DNA of 64,000 bases from Paragordius varius. Lineage: Eukaryota > Animalia > Nematomorpha. The notes beneath the pieces were generated by a model. The model saw nothing but the letters and a program-made list of their open reading frames with translations, made no database searches and was not told the DNA's origin. A program made the translations under genes and the position numbers. Location: NCBI GenBank assembly GCA_964247055.1, contig OZ176059.1, positions 3,641,730 through 3,705,729 of the forward strand, given 5' to 3'. This document shows, one piece after another, positions 51,355 through 64,000 of this stretch (its first letter is position 1; every line of letters begins with the position of its first letter).

Positions 51355-51357
51355 TAA
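51355..51357. other. Left target-site duplication (TAA)
   Basis: The empty monomer reads TTCTATAATATAAGAAATG. The filled site reads TTCTA-TAA-[element]-TAA-TATAAGAAATG. Confidence 0.85.
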
Positions 51358-52355
51358 CACAGTGTGCAAAATTGGGGGTATTTATTTTCTCAGGATATTA
51401 TATTAAGCTTAATATGACCGTTGTGACATAGACATCCTAAAAATATAAGGATAAAAAAAATTGTCAATGTAGAAAATTTTTTTTTCACTTTTACCATATA
51501 TGGATATATTCGGAAAAAATCAATTTATTTGCATAATACTTGATCAAAAATTATAAAACTTATATATAATATAAATAATATTAAATAAATATTATTTGCA
51601 AATTTTGGCTCAATATGAATGGATAGATTTAAAATAAACGTCAATTTATTAAATCCAACTAAATTTATCCCTTTATATTAGTAACATAAAAAATACTTGA
51701 TGAAAATCAATATAATATGCGCCAAAATTTAAGTTTAACTTTATATGTTAATATAAATATTACTTATATATAATAAAAATTAGGTTTTAACTAAGTTAAA
51801 AATTTTTGAAATTTTTTATTTTACTAAAATAAAATTAAATTTTTTTAATATCAACTGTAATATAATCATGTCTGGTGATTATAAATATAACCATATGGAT
51901 TTTTTTACCTGGATTTTTGAATTGTAGATGATATTGACTGTTGCTTTACCCTGATATGATGGTATATTTTATAATAATTATAGATAAATATATTTGGAAT
52001 TTAGATAAAACATTGAAAAACCAATGTAATCCATTGTGAAAATCATATTTTAAAGACAAATTTGCTAATCACAAGCAAACATCCACCAGAAAATTATATT
52101 TTGATACATTATGTTCATTGTGTAATAAATTAATATATTTAATTTTTTTAATATAAAATTGTTTACTTGTTTTTATACGAATGTGGGCAAGGTCCATCCA
52201 AAGATTTCTATTAGTTTTAATGTTGAGTTCTGCCAAAGAATCGGTTTCTCTTAAATTACCCATTCTAATTTAAATAAAACTCCTCCATAGATTGCTATTT
52301 TTTGTTATGTTGAGTTATGCCAGTATTCAGGCACATAATTATTTTAGGTTCATTT
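51358..52355 (+). repeat. Left inverted arm (998 bp)
   Basis: Reverse complement of 52819-53801. The inner 917 bp differ from the right arm by 5 substitutions and one 4-bp indel (manual comparison). The outer 81 bp are more divergent. Confidence 0.95.
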
Positions 52356-52818
52356 GCTTCTTAAGCCATCGCAAACAACCTATCCTACTTCGGGTATATG
52401 AAATTCAACTCGTTGAAAGTTCTTGATATTGAGAAAGTCTTTTTGCCAAAATATTAATAACATGAAATACCCGATTAAAATAGTTTATAAAATGATTATC
52501 AACACCTTTTAAAAGATTTAAATATAAGAATTTGAAGAAATGGTATTCAAAAAAAAATTAAAAGGGCTGCAAAATCTTGTCTCATGAACCGTGCAACATA
52601 CTATAACTATAAAAACTTGCAGACATTTATATTAAAAATAAGTATGACATAAAATTTAATTGATAATTCAGGGCCATAAATAAGCTTTTAGAGCCCAAGT
52701 TTTGGTAAAACTGATGTATACTTCGTTAACACTTTCTTTTGCCATAAACCGTTTTTTAAAAAATCATTCAAGAAAAAACTGGCCGTATTCATAAGATTTT
52801 TTTAAATTTTACATTTCT
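52356..52818. other. Unique 463-bp loop/spacer of the foldback element
   Basis: Arm complementarity stops at GGTTCATTT (52355) / AAATGAACC (52819). The sequence between is non-repetitive and has no ORF in the track. Confidence 0.9.
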
Positions 52819-53801
52819 AAATGAACCTAAAATAATTATGTGCCTGAATACTGGCATAACTCAACATAACAAAAAATAGCAATCTATGGAGGAGTTTTAT
52901 TTAAATTAGAATGGGTAATTTAAGAGAAACCAATTCTTTGGTAGAACTCAACATTAAAACTAATAGAAATCTTTGGATGGACCTTGCCCACATTCGTATA
53001 AAAACAAGTAAACAATTTTATATTAAAAAAATTAAATATATTAATTTATTACACAATGAACATAATGTATCAAAATATAATTTTCTGGTGGATGTTTGCT
53101 TGTGATTAGCAAATTTGTCTTTAAAATATGATTTTCACAATGGATTACATTGGTTTTTCAATGTTATATCTAAATTCCAAATATATTTATCTATAATTAT
53201 TATAAAATATACCATCATATCAGGGTAAAGCAACAGTCAATATCATCTACAATTCAAAAATCCAGGTAAAAAAATCCATATGGTTATATTTATAATCACC
53301 AGACATGATTATATTACAGTTGATATTAAAAAAATTTAATTTTATTTTAGTAAAATAAAAAATTTCAAAAATTTTTAACTTAGTTAAAACCTAATTTTTA
53401 TTATATATAAGTAATATTTATATTAACATATAAAGTTAAACTTAAATTTTGGCGCATATTATATTGATTTTCATCAAGTATTTTTTATGTTACTAATATA
53501 AAGGGCTAAATTTAGTTGGATTTAATAAATTGACGTTTATTTTAAATCTATCCATTCATATTGAGCCAAAATTTGCAAATAATATTTATTTAATATTATT
53601 TATATTATATATTTTATAATTTTTGATCAAGTATTATGCAAATAAATTGATTTTTTCCGAATATATCCATATATGGAAAAAGTGAAAAAAAAATTTTCTA
53701 CATTGACAATTTTTTTTATCCTTATATTTTTGAGATGTATATGTCACAAGGGTTATATTAAGCTAGGTATGATATCTTGAGTAAATTTGTTGCACACTGT
53801 G
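52819..53801 (-). repeat. Right inverted arm (983 bp)
   Basis: Reverse complement of 51358-52355. The mirrored 64-aa ORFs (52069-52263 minus, 52911-53105 plus) differ at two residues. Confidence 0.95.
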
Positions 53802-60085: not shown

Positions 60086-61456
60086 CAAAAAAGAATTGGT
60101 TACGTGCATTATTTAAGGTTGATTGTTGAATCAAAATCATTATGAATATGAATTCTATACAACAATTCAATAATGTTAAGAGCAAGTATCATTTTAAGAC
60201 AAATACGTATTTAAGCTCAAATAAAAGACCAATTTAACCTATGAGATTAATTTTAAATCTTTCACATAGACTCTACAAATCAAAAATGAATCAGTTACGT
60301 GCATTATTTAAAAATTGTTGAATCATAAAATAGAATTATATAATATAAGAAATCAATAATGTTAAGCGCAAGTATCATTTTAAGACAAATACGTATTTAA
60401 GCTCAAATAAAAGACCAATTTTACCTATTTTAAATCTTTCACATAGACTCTACAAATCAAAAAAGAATTGGTTCGTGCATTATTTAAGGTTGATTGTTGA
60501 ACAAAATCATTATGAATATGAATTCTATACAACAATTCAATAATGTTAAGAGCAAGTATCATTTTAAGAAAATACGTATTTAAGCCTAAATAAAAGACCA
60601 TTGTTTTTACCTATAAGATACTTTTTAAAATCCCGCACATAGACTTTACAAATCAAAAAAGAATCAGTTACGTGCATTATTCAAGGTTGATTGTTAAAAT
60701 AGAATTCTATAATATAAGAAATGAATAATGTGAAGCGCAAGTATCATTTTAAAATGACAAATACATATTTAAGATCAAATAAAAGACCAATATTTTTACC
60801 TGTAAGATTATTTTTAAATCCTTCACATAGACTCTACAAATCAAAAAAGAGTTGGTTACGTGCATTATTTAAGGTTGATTTTGGAATCAAAATCATTATG
60901 AATATGAATTCTATACAACAATTCAATAATGTTAAGAGCAAGTATCATTTTAAGACAAATACGTATTTAAGCTCAAATAAAAGACCAATTTTACCTATAA
61001 GATTAATTTTAAATCTTTCACATAGCTACAAATTAAAAATGAATTGGTTACGTGCATTATTTAAGGTTGATTGTTGAATCAAAATCATTATGAATATGAA
61101 TTCTATACAACAATTCAATAATGTGAAGCGCAAGTATCATTTTAAAATGACAAATACGTATTTAAGCTTAAATAAAAGACCAATGTTTTTACCTGTAAGA
61201 TTATTTTTAAATCCTTCACATAGACTCAACAAATCAAAAAAGAATCAGTTACGTGCATTATTCAAGGTTGATTGTTAAAATAGAATTCTATAATATAAGA
61301 AATGAATAATGTGAAGCGCAAGTATCATTTTAAAATGACAAATACATATTTAAGCTTAAATAAAAGACCAATGTTTTTACCTGTAAGATTATTTTTAAAT
61401 CCTTCACATAGACTCAACAAATCAAAAAAGAATCAGTTACGTGCACTATTTAAGGG

Positions 61457-63406
61457 TTTGGGTTAGGGTTAGGGTTAGGGTTAGGGTTAGGGTTAGGGTT
61501 AGGGTTAGGGTTAGGGTTAGGGTTAGGGTTAGGGTTAGGGTTAGGGTTAGGGTTAGGGTTAGGGTTAGGGTTAGGGTTAGGGTTAGGGTTAGGGTTAGGG
61601 TTAGGGTTAGGGTTAGGGTTAGGGTTAGGGTTAGGGTTAGGGTTAGGGTTAGGGTTAGGGTTAGGGTTAGGGTTAGGGTTAGGGTTAGGGTTAGGGTTAG
61701 GGTTAGGGTTAGGGTTAGGGTTAGGGTTAGGGTTAGGGTTAGGGTTAGGGTTAGGGTTAGGGTTAGGGTTAGGGTTAGGGTTAGGGTTAGGGTTAGGGTT
61801 AGGGTTAGGGTTAGGGTTAGGGTTAGGGTTAGGGTTAGGGTTAGGGTTAGGGTTAGGGTTAGGGTTAGGGTTAGGGTTAGGGTTAGGGTTAGGGTTAGGG
61901 TTAGGGTTAGGGTTAGGGTTAGGGTTAGGGTTAGGGTTAGGGTTAGGGTTAGGGTTAGGGTTAGGGTTAGGGTTAGGGTTAGGGTTAGGGTTAGGGTTAG
62001 GGTTAGGGTTAGGGTTAGGGTTAGGGTTAGGGTTAGGGTTAGGGTTAGGGTTAGGGTTAGGGTTAGGGTTAGGGTTAGGGTTAGGGTTAGGGTTAGGGTT
62101 AGGGTTAGGGTTAGGGTTAGGGTTAGGGTTAGGGTTAGGGTTAGGGTTAGGGTTAGGGTTAGGGTTAGGGTTAGGGTTAGGGTTAGGGTTAGGGTTAGGG
62201 TTAGGGTTAGGGTTAGGGTTAGGGTTAGGGTTAGGGTTAGGGTTAGGGTTAGGGTTAGGGTTAGGGTTAGGGTTAGGGTTAGGGTTAGGGTTAGGGTTAG
62301 GGTTAGGGTTAGGGTTAGGGTTAGGGTTAGGGTTAGGGTTAGGGTTAGGGTTAGGGTTAGGGTTAGGGTTAGGGTTAGGGTTAGGGTTAGGGTTAGGGTT
62401 AGGGTTAGGGTTAGGGTTAGGGTTAGGGTTAGGGTTAGGGTTAGGGTTAGGGTTAGGGTTAGGGTTAGGGTTAGGGTTAGGGTTAGGGTTAGGGTTAGGG
62501 TTAGGGTTAGGGTTAGGGTTAGGGTTAGGGTTAGGGTTAGGGTTAGGGTTAGGGTTAGGGTTAGGGTTAGGGTTAGGGTTAGGGTTAGGGTTAGGGTTAG
62601 GGTTAGGGTTAGGGTTAGGGTTAGGGTTAGGGTTAGGGTTAGGGTTAGGGTTAGGGTTAGGGTTAGGGTTAGGGTTAGGGTTAGGGTTAGGGTTAGGGTT
62701 AGGGTTAGGGTTAGGGTTAGGGTTAGGGTTAGGGTTAGGGTTAGGGTTAGGGTTAGGGTTAGGGTTAGGGTTAGGGTTAGGGTTAGGGTTAGGGTTAGGG
62801 TTAGGGTTAGGGTTAGGGTTAGGGTTAGGGTTAGGGTTAGGGTTAGGGTTAGGGTTAGGGTTAGGGTTAGGGTTAGGGTTAGGGTTAGGGTTAGGGTTAG
62901 GGTTAGGGTTAGGGTTAGGGTTAGGGTTAGGGTTAGGGTTAGGGTTAGGGTTAGGGTTAGGGTTAGGGTTAGGGTTAGGGTTAGGGTTAGGGTTAGGGTT
63001 AGGGTTAGGGTTAGGGTTAGGGTTAGGGTTAGGGTTAGGGTTAGGGTTAGGGTTAGGGTTAGGGTTAGGGTTAGGGTTAGGGTTAGGGTTAGGGTTAGGG
63101 TTAGGGTTAGGGTTAGGGTTAGGGTTAGGGTTAGGGTTAGGGTTAGGGTTAGGGTTAGGGTTAGGGTTAGGGTTAGGGTTAGGGTTAGGGTTAGGGTTAG
63201 GGTTAGGGTTAGGGTTAGGGTTAGGGTTAGGGTTAGGGTTAGGGTTAGGGTTAGGGTTAGGGTTAGGGTTAGGGTTAGGGTTAGGGTTAGGGTTAGGGTT
63301 AGGGTTAGGGTTAGGGTTAGGGTTAGGGTTAGGGTTAGGGTTAGGGTTAGGGTTAGGGTTAGGGTTAGGGTTAGGGTTAGGGTTAGGGTTAGGGTTAGGG
63401 TTAGGG
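61457..63406 (+). repeat. Telomere, (TTAGGG)n; 324 perfect repeats at 61463-63406
   Basis: Uninterrupted TTAGGG for 1944 bp after one TTTGGG unit. The G-rich strand is the + strand, so this is a right chromosome end. Confidence 0.99.
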
Positions 63407-63832
63407 TTGGGATTAGGGTTAGGGTTAGGGTAGGGTTAGGGTTAGGGTGTAGGTTAGGGTTAGGGTTAGGGTTAGGGTTAGGGTTAGGGTTAGGGTTAGG
63501 GTAGGGTTAGGGTTGGTGGTATGTAGGGTTAGGGTTAGGGTTAGGGTTAGGGTTAGGGTTGGGTTAGGGTTTGGGGTTAGGGTTAGGGTTGGGTTGGGGT
63601 TGGGGTTGGGGTTAGGGTTAGGGGTAGGGTTAGGGTTAGGGTTAGGGGGTGGGGTTGGGGTTAGGGTTGGGTGAGGGTTAGGGGTTGGGTGAGGGGTGGG
63701 GGAGGGTAGGTTAGGGTTAGGGGGAGGGGGGGTTGGGTAGGGTTAGGGTTAGGGGTGTGGTGGGGTTGGGGGTGGGGGTGGGGGTGGGGGTGGGTAGATA
63801 GGGCGTGAGGGGAAGAAGAAGAGGAGGGTGGT
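63407..63832 (+). repeat. Degenerate telomeric/G-rich tail (probably low-coverage consensus)
   Basis: TTAGGG progressively decays to TTGGG, TAGGG, TGGGGG and G-runs, then GAAGAAGAAG. Confidence 0.7.
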
Positions 63833-64000
63833 AAGTTAAAAGTTAAAGTTCAAGTTAAAGTTAAAGTTAAAGTTAAAGTTAAAGTTAAGTTACAGTAAAG
63901 TTAAAGTTAAAGTTAAGTTAAGTTAAGTTAAGTTAAAGTTAAAGTTAAAGTTAAAGTTAAAGTTAAAGTTAAAGTTAAAGTTAAAGTTAAAGTTAACGTT
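63833..64000 (+). repeat. (TTAAAG)n / (TTAAG)n terminal tract, probably miscalled telomere
   Basis: Hexamer-period repeat that retains TTA, at the very end of the window and distal to the telomere. Confidence 0.6.

Follow-up and report, generated by a model that had tools for sequence, protein, structure and literature searches.

In the satellite array of a Paragordius varius contig sits an insert of 2444 bp (51358-53801 of the window, by which we mean the whole 64-kb stretch of DNA analyzed here), and this insert derives from a Chapaev3 DNA transposon: it is young, non-coding and of the foldback type. It has 12-bp tips that begin with CAC, a 3-bp duplication of the target (TSD) of the TWA type, about 20 young copies in the genome, a transposase-bearing relative that shares its ends and, between its two ends, an offset of 10-11 bp, which is to say one helical turn. 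This 12/23-like asymmetry looks like an old trait of the whole Chapaev3 group. How might such an element move, and what would its unequal ends be doing? We think it reasonably likely that this is a non-autonomous cut-and-paste element moved in trans, and that an asymmetric synapse prefers unequal ends, in a 12/23-like manner built from different parts. In other words, the element probably works like a 12/23 system, yet it stands outside the RSS/RAG and Transib families.

The array around the insert is AT-rich (24% GC), is made of units of about 188 bp and runs up to a TTAGGG telomere at 61453; its intact monomers, which serve as empty sites and lack the duplicate, identify the TSD of the window copy as TAA. 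Most of the copy is a long inverted repeat, with arms of 972 bp (97.9% identical) around a 463-bp center. A long open reading frame (ORF) was looked for in the window copy and none was found, which rules out a coding role for it. The transposon is present in only one satellite unit of the window, and its parts are collected in the table.

Table 1. Parts of the element and its flanks, in window coordinates
Feature	Position	Strand	Remarks
Left TSD, TAA (3 bp, TWA type)	51355..51357	+	Duplicate absent from empty satellite monomers
12-bp TIR of the long-type end	51358..51369	+	Starts CAC; contains the heptamer look-alike
Zone where the long end has its 11 additional bases	51370..51383	+	By alignment, exact gap placement ambiguous; indel in the same place in outside families
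Long-end zone with end-specific sequence (positions 1-81)	51358..51438	+	Differs from the short end at 10 diagnostic sites; probably native 3' end
Equivalent of the distal Chapaev3 motif, position 73	51430..51445	+	Weak match, profile score 2.1, second-best site
Left inverted-repeat arm, 972 bp	51384..52355	+	97.9% identical to the right arm; homologous to what follows the transposase stop codon in the 6-kb relative
Central unique segment, non-coding	52356..52818	.	Orientation varies between copies; resembles (70-77%) the 3' untranslated region of relatives with a transposase
Right inverted-repeat arm	52819..53786	-	
Equivalent of the distal Chapaev3 motif, position 62, short end	53725..53740	-	Weak match, profile score 3.4, best site
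Short-end zone with end-specific sequence (positions 1-70; holds the 12-bp tip 53790-53801)	53732..53801	-	Probably the retained native 5' tip
Right TSD, TAA	53802..53804	+	

A first-pass annotation had read these ends as RSS-like, with a perfect heptamer, spacers of 23 and 12 bp and a 4/9 match to the nonamer. CACAGTG does stand at both tips (51358-51364 on the plus strand and 53801-53795 on the minus strand) and nowhere else in the 64-kb window; a single heptamer is close to what chance would give in the window (about 1.7), unlike an inverted pair of them with 970-bp arms and a TSD, which is not chance-like. The identical tip, however, extends over 12 bp and not 7. The subterminal block that begins at 51388 and 53782 is indeed 40/50 identical and offset by exactly 11 bp, and this difference is solid, but the labels “12” and “23” hinge on where the block is taken to begin. 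As for the nonamer, the 4/9 match holds at the 12-spacer end but falls to 2/9 at the 23-spacer end; at 12 or 23 (+/-1) bp past the heptamer, an A-rich nonamer scores 1-2/9 at the long end, which has no A-tract there, and 2-4/9 at the short end.

Could these nonetheless be true RSS signals (heptamer, 12/23 spacer and nonamer) of a Transib/RAG-like transposon, which would make them substrates for RAG1/2? The two perfect heptamers with their 11-bp offset invite the thought, as do the AA at positions 5-6 of the short-end nonamer and the RAG1-like fold of a modeled homologue of the transposase. Against these stand the 2/9 nonamer of the long end, a TSD that is 3 bp and never 5, and a transposase of the Chapaev3 type that aligns to RAG1 only from residue 458, and we regard the idea as extremely improbable. 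Moreover, CACAGTG occurs in none (0/53) of the motif-bearing Chapaev3 ends from outside this genome, most of which start with CACTGG; the heptamer is therefore family-specific and the ends are not RSSs. Set against the usual Chapaev3 end, CACTG(G), the perfect heptamer is a variant peculiar to this family. The RSS reading thus fails in its details: the nonamer is missing, the TSD is 3 rather than 5 bp, and the distal conserved site lies at about 62/73 rather than 20/31. Because 3-bp TSDs occur in some Transibs, TSD length alone is not decisive, and it is TSD, nonamer and transposase type that rule out membership in Transib/RAG. What is common to these ends and the RSS is layout only—a tip, a spacer whose length varies by one helical turn and a distal site.

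Is the offset, then, an accident of one copy, the chance 11-bp indel that the first-pass annotation itself had raised? A pattern for the family's ends, run against the genome (110.6 Mb in 44 contigs), found 44 ends in two length classes, and the reversed control pattern had 0 matches. The inner block begins at offset 37 in 22 short ends and at 48 (21) or 47 (4) in long ends, with small deletions in three ends among the loci examined. Among 20 long/short pairs, the difference is 11 bp in 15 and 10 bp in 2 (2 more have deletions, and 1 has lost a tip); their TSDs are 3 bp in 16, of which 12 are TWA, 4 bp in 2 and 5 bp in none. The offset recurs in the genome's copies and, as set out below, at 10-11 bp across divergent Chapaev3 families, which rules out the single-copy indel. 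The first-pass annotation had also said that symmetric or variable spacers in other copies would count against its reading: 17 of the 20 pairs keep 10-11 bp, but the genome does hold two symmetric pairs, both without a TSD. The long/long pair (C2:12917025-12922359, L022/L023) has flanks that are inverted duplicates of each other over 1.4 kb (98% alike); here, arm copying ran past the transposon tip into host DNA. The short/short pair (C8:1323662-1326048, L047/L034) has unrelated flanks and a netrin-like exon next to it; it is as expected of a recombination product, possibly a rearrangement breakpoint between two copies. The two copies with 4-bp TSDs are at C2:1651654 and C2:12566698 (TTTG and TTTA), 4 bp being the TSD length of the sister Chapaev group.

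The copies of 2.1-2.4 kb have arms of 790-970 bp at 92-99% identity, and within full-length copies the arms are 95-100% alike; still, the ten diagnostic differences persist within the first 81 bp. Conversion has entered this end-specific zone in some copies (at all ten sites in C3:1063156), and no copy flanked by a TSD has lost the gap. A gap this close to the tip is difficult for conversion to cross on mechanical grounds, so its survival alone is no proof of selection. Two longer copies, C3:858202 and C6:8910984, were considered as transposase carriers and rejected, since their length is due to nested insertions; in the first (C3:858202-863300, L005/L036), a LINE-like element with endonuclease and reverse-transcriptase pieces is nested in the center. 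Another copy (L008:724-1571) lies inside a broken hAT-like transposase gene with what looks by eye like a BED-finger-like start.

Who, then, carries the transposase? A 6-kb copy at C5:8125668-8131666 has 511 terminal bp in common with the window copy (91% identity), its inner stretches being 70-77% alike, and its exons read as the C-terminus of a Chapaev3 transposase. Searches were run exon by exon rather than with a joined gene model. Pfam and PDB sequence searches gave nothing significant; the last exon (L026:152-340) alone matches 107 proteins, many of them 540-620 aa, which align with it on the K.H....H and GER.HQ motifs, as in the published Garfield_BM. A candidate for the autonomous transposase, which the first-pass annotation had wished to see identified, thus lies in a relative with the same ends. 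A profile places transposase residues 177-547 on both arms of this copy, head to head (the N-terminal Chapa zinc finger is present in homologues; the profile covered 177-547 only). Both of its tips therefore lie 3' of a transposase gene. The window copy is thus a folded-back stretch of 3' sequence, and the roughly 70 bp of its short tip probably represent the native 5' end. The long arms would have formed when the 3' arm was copied over the 5' interior, a homogenization that spared the first 70-81 bp of each end.

In the parts of the literature available to us, Chapaev3 elements (Garfield, Merrow, Conan, Chapaev3_AC; PMC4079192, PMC3014272) are marked by CAC ends, a TIR of 11-19 bp, a 3-bp TWA TSD and a transposase of about 550 aa with an H(4)H motif region. 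The window copy has the CAC start with a short TIR, the TWA TSD and, in the relative with the same ends, a Chapaev3-type DDE transposase; it differs from the elements described there in being a long-arm foldback derivative and in having CACAG rather than CACTG tips. Galileo foldbacks (PMC3573991) likewise extend their TIRs from internal sequence and include chimeric copies without a TSD, but Galileo belongs to the P superfamily and has a 7-bp TSD where the window family has 3 bp; unlike in Galileo, most of the transposase gene can become part of the arms here, with the outermost 70-81 bp remaining specific to each end. Elsewhere in this genome, the transposase exons of many other Chapaev3 families stand in head-to-head inverted pairs (e.g., C2:7416773/7417705, C1:10079161/10079882, C3:8019396/8021627 and C4:4441359/4443234), so foldback formation is a genome-wide habit.

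We then looked beyond this genome, at 80 Chapaev3 loci from a metagenome scan plus more from protein look-ups (scans of viral and bacterial contigs held no relatives). Among the 5' ends, 22 have a motif like GCTGAWTYCRAA that begins at position 63; among the 3' ends, it begins at 73 in 15 and at 72-75 in a few. Each family was then represented by a single element (pairwise transposase identity 31-66%, median 48%), and we measured offsets by a motif-free correlation of both ends together with a motif profile. The offset was 10 or 11 bp in 12 of the initial 19 families, including L064, which is not significant alone; two families fetched later as a held-out test (L147/L148 and L150, the latter from the moth Mythimna loreyi) were both 62/73, which brings the count to 14 of 21. 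It is 13 of 15 among families with an ORF of at least 477 aa, and offsets of 7, 9 and 14, like one ambiguous case, come from decayed copies only. Three families are symmetric: L078 and L140 (both with a TSD) and L145 (with an intact ORF). Excluded were L097 (63/63), probably two neighboring elements of different families, and L142-L144, which have no usable ends.

The extra bases always lie directly behind the 12-13-bp tip, as in the window copy. The spacer is only 35-38% identical between families and tends to be an A/T run at the long end. Here the first-pass annotation had proposed to test whether the offset and a CTCARGATAT block are both conserved while the spacer varies: the offset is kept and the spacer turns over, but CTCARGATAT is not conserved outside the family. 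The long end is the 5' one in L073 and L146, and L146 mirrors the window copy in its homogenized arms, its 11-bp tip offset and its TAA duplication. The distal motif scores 2-3 in the window family against 12-23 in the others, and a genome-wide pattern for the GCTGA distal motif did not find it in this genome's own Chapaev3 ends (3 hits versus 1 for the control).

One might still imagine a neutral indel in a founder, copied into every family member, with the likeness to other families being coincidence. The copies do come from a recent founder (arm identity 94-99.6%), and the distal motif is weak in the window family. But 14 of the 18 asymmetric outside families are at 10-11 bp, an agreement of about 1e-12 under uniform offsets of 1-25 and independent families (kinship makes this figure too small), the indel is in the same place in those families, and the two held-out families fit the prediction. 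The neutral-founder account, which we hold to be very unlikely, is already largely refuted. The claim of RAG-related, 12/23-type ends divides: what stands is an offset that is family-wide, recurs in Chapaev3 and goes with a transposase type whose model folds like RAG1, and what does not are the details of the RSS.

That fold was modeled on a homologue, P0030 (pLDDT 92), and not on the Paragordius varius enzyme itself. The model has a RAG1-type RNase H fold with a large insertion domain; its best match is RAG1 (Z 19.0, rmsd 3.6-3.8 over 366-369 residues, RAG1 458-1008), followed by BbRAG1L (Z 18.4), HzTransib (12.6), the P element (12.0) and Hermes (9.7). The alignment leaves out RAG1 before residue 458, and with it most of the nonamer-binding domain. 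The N-terminal 135 residues of the model resemble a ZAD zinc finger, at modest scores (Z 5.9 and 4.9), and a low-confidence linker (134-154) joins them to the core. In the model, then, a ZAD-like zinc finger stands where RAG1 has its nonamer-binding domain. ZAD domains dimerize. The nonamer-binding dimer of RAG1 pivots on a flexible linker and thereby enforces the 12/23 rule (10.1101/2023.08.20.553239).

Let us imagine how these parts might work together. A Chapaev3 transposase of the same genome would move the window copy in trans, its RAG1-like core cutting at the tips, while its N-terminal zinc-finger domain, as a dimer tethered by a flexible linker, would, if the model is a guide, grip the distal sites at 62-63 and 73. 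One helical turn would keep both distal sites on the same face of the DNA and so give an asymmetric synaptic complex; the N-terminal dimer could tilt toward the short end, and the synapse would then prefer one long and one short end. We infer this pairing rule from the ends and the model.

Selection could also have kept an inherited offset for some other purpose: the ends might be bound independently, the extra turn serving a bend, a host-factor site or a terminator/promoter, and symmetric pairs might transpose perfectly well. Symmetric elements with a TSD (L078, L140) and one with an intact ORF (L145) are what such independent binding would allow, the orientation is not fixed, as L073 and L146 tell us, and an A/T-run spacer could simply bend the DNA. 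We think this unlikely: the distal motif holds its positions while the spacer sequence turns over, all the symmetric families have extended TIRs, which suggest secondary overwriting, L140 is nested in a clade that includes an offset-10 family, and neither symmetric pair in the Paragordius varius genome has a TSD. As for L145, its element (L145:15-2391) stands for a divergent, Chapaev3-like family whose 540-aa ORF is intact, whose tips read CACG and whose ends are symmetric, and it offers a natural control for pairing.

Where would an asymmetric synapse leave Chapaev3 among its relatives? For Kapitonov and Koonin, Chapaev3 belongs to the Transib superfamily as a distant clade (PMC4411706); other authors assign it to CMC. 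One-turn asymmetry has been described in five Transib families (Transib5, Transib2_AG and TransibN1-3_AG; PMC1131882) and in Subgroup I Transibs (PMC9435367), and a 2021 review names some Transibs as the only known transposons with 12/23 asymmetry (PMC8355894). Those Transibs (PMC1131882, PMC9435367) have CAC tips, a one-turn end difference and a RAG1-type fold, as here, but the rule for them is a 5-bp TSD and an A-rich nonamer at about 30-38, whereas the window family has a 3-bp TSD and no nonamer, and the conserved distal site of Chapaev3 lies about 40 bp further inward than the Transib nonamer. RAGL-A of Ptychodera has a 10-bp end asymmetry (10.1101/2023.08.20.553239), and the ProtoRAG TIRs are 27/31 (PMC8289069). 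With these two and with RAG1/RAG2, Chapaev3 has in common the catalytic core fold (Z 18-19) and an order of tip, short A-rich stretch, length-asymmetric spacer and distal site; unlike RAG1/RAG2, it has no nonamer, and the ZAD-like domain replaces the nonamer-binding domain. Nor is a RAG2 gene seen in the intact outside elements, where a single transposase ORF of about 550 aa in 2.1-3.1 kb leaves no room for one. In the covered part of the Chapaev3 literature, we found no description of the 10-11-bp offset or the 63/73 motif.

Published asymmetric ends have so far come from some Transib and RAGL transposons, and Chapaev3, a branch that lies farther off, pairs the shared catalytic fold with other DNA-binding parts. 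A conserved one-turn offset there would mean either that asymmetric recognition is much older than the RSS or that it evolved twice on one scaffold. The boldest version, which we put forward tentatively and think rather doubtful, is true one-turn pairing through a hinged dimeric ZAD-like finger, without RAG2, inherited from the ancestor that Chapaev3, Transib and RAG have in common; the 12/23 principle would then predate the nonamer and its binding domain. Material for such tests exists in many intact single-gene Chapaev3 elements of 2.2-2.7 kb (e.g., L063, L066, L068 and L150); the 63/73 motif predicts which end bases matter for mutation, and offset and motif together make a practical rule for annotating Chapaev3 ends.

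Two smaller observations deserve mention. One clade of outside families (L075, L096, L107 and L073) has two copies of the distal motif at each end, spaced by 24 bp (39/63 and 49/73), which points to two putative binding sites that shift together. And in the window itself, positions 1-61452 are subtelomeric satellite, with units of 175-198 bp, variants of 235 bp scattered among them and, at a higher order, a repeat of about 7.35 kb; positions 61453-64000 hold about 385 TTAGGG repeats, a short G-rich stretch and, at the contig end, about 29 copies of AAGTTA that are perhaps an artifact of long-read basecalling.
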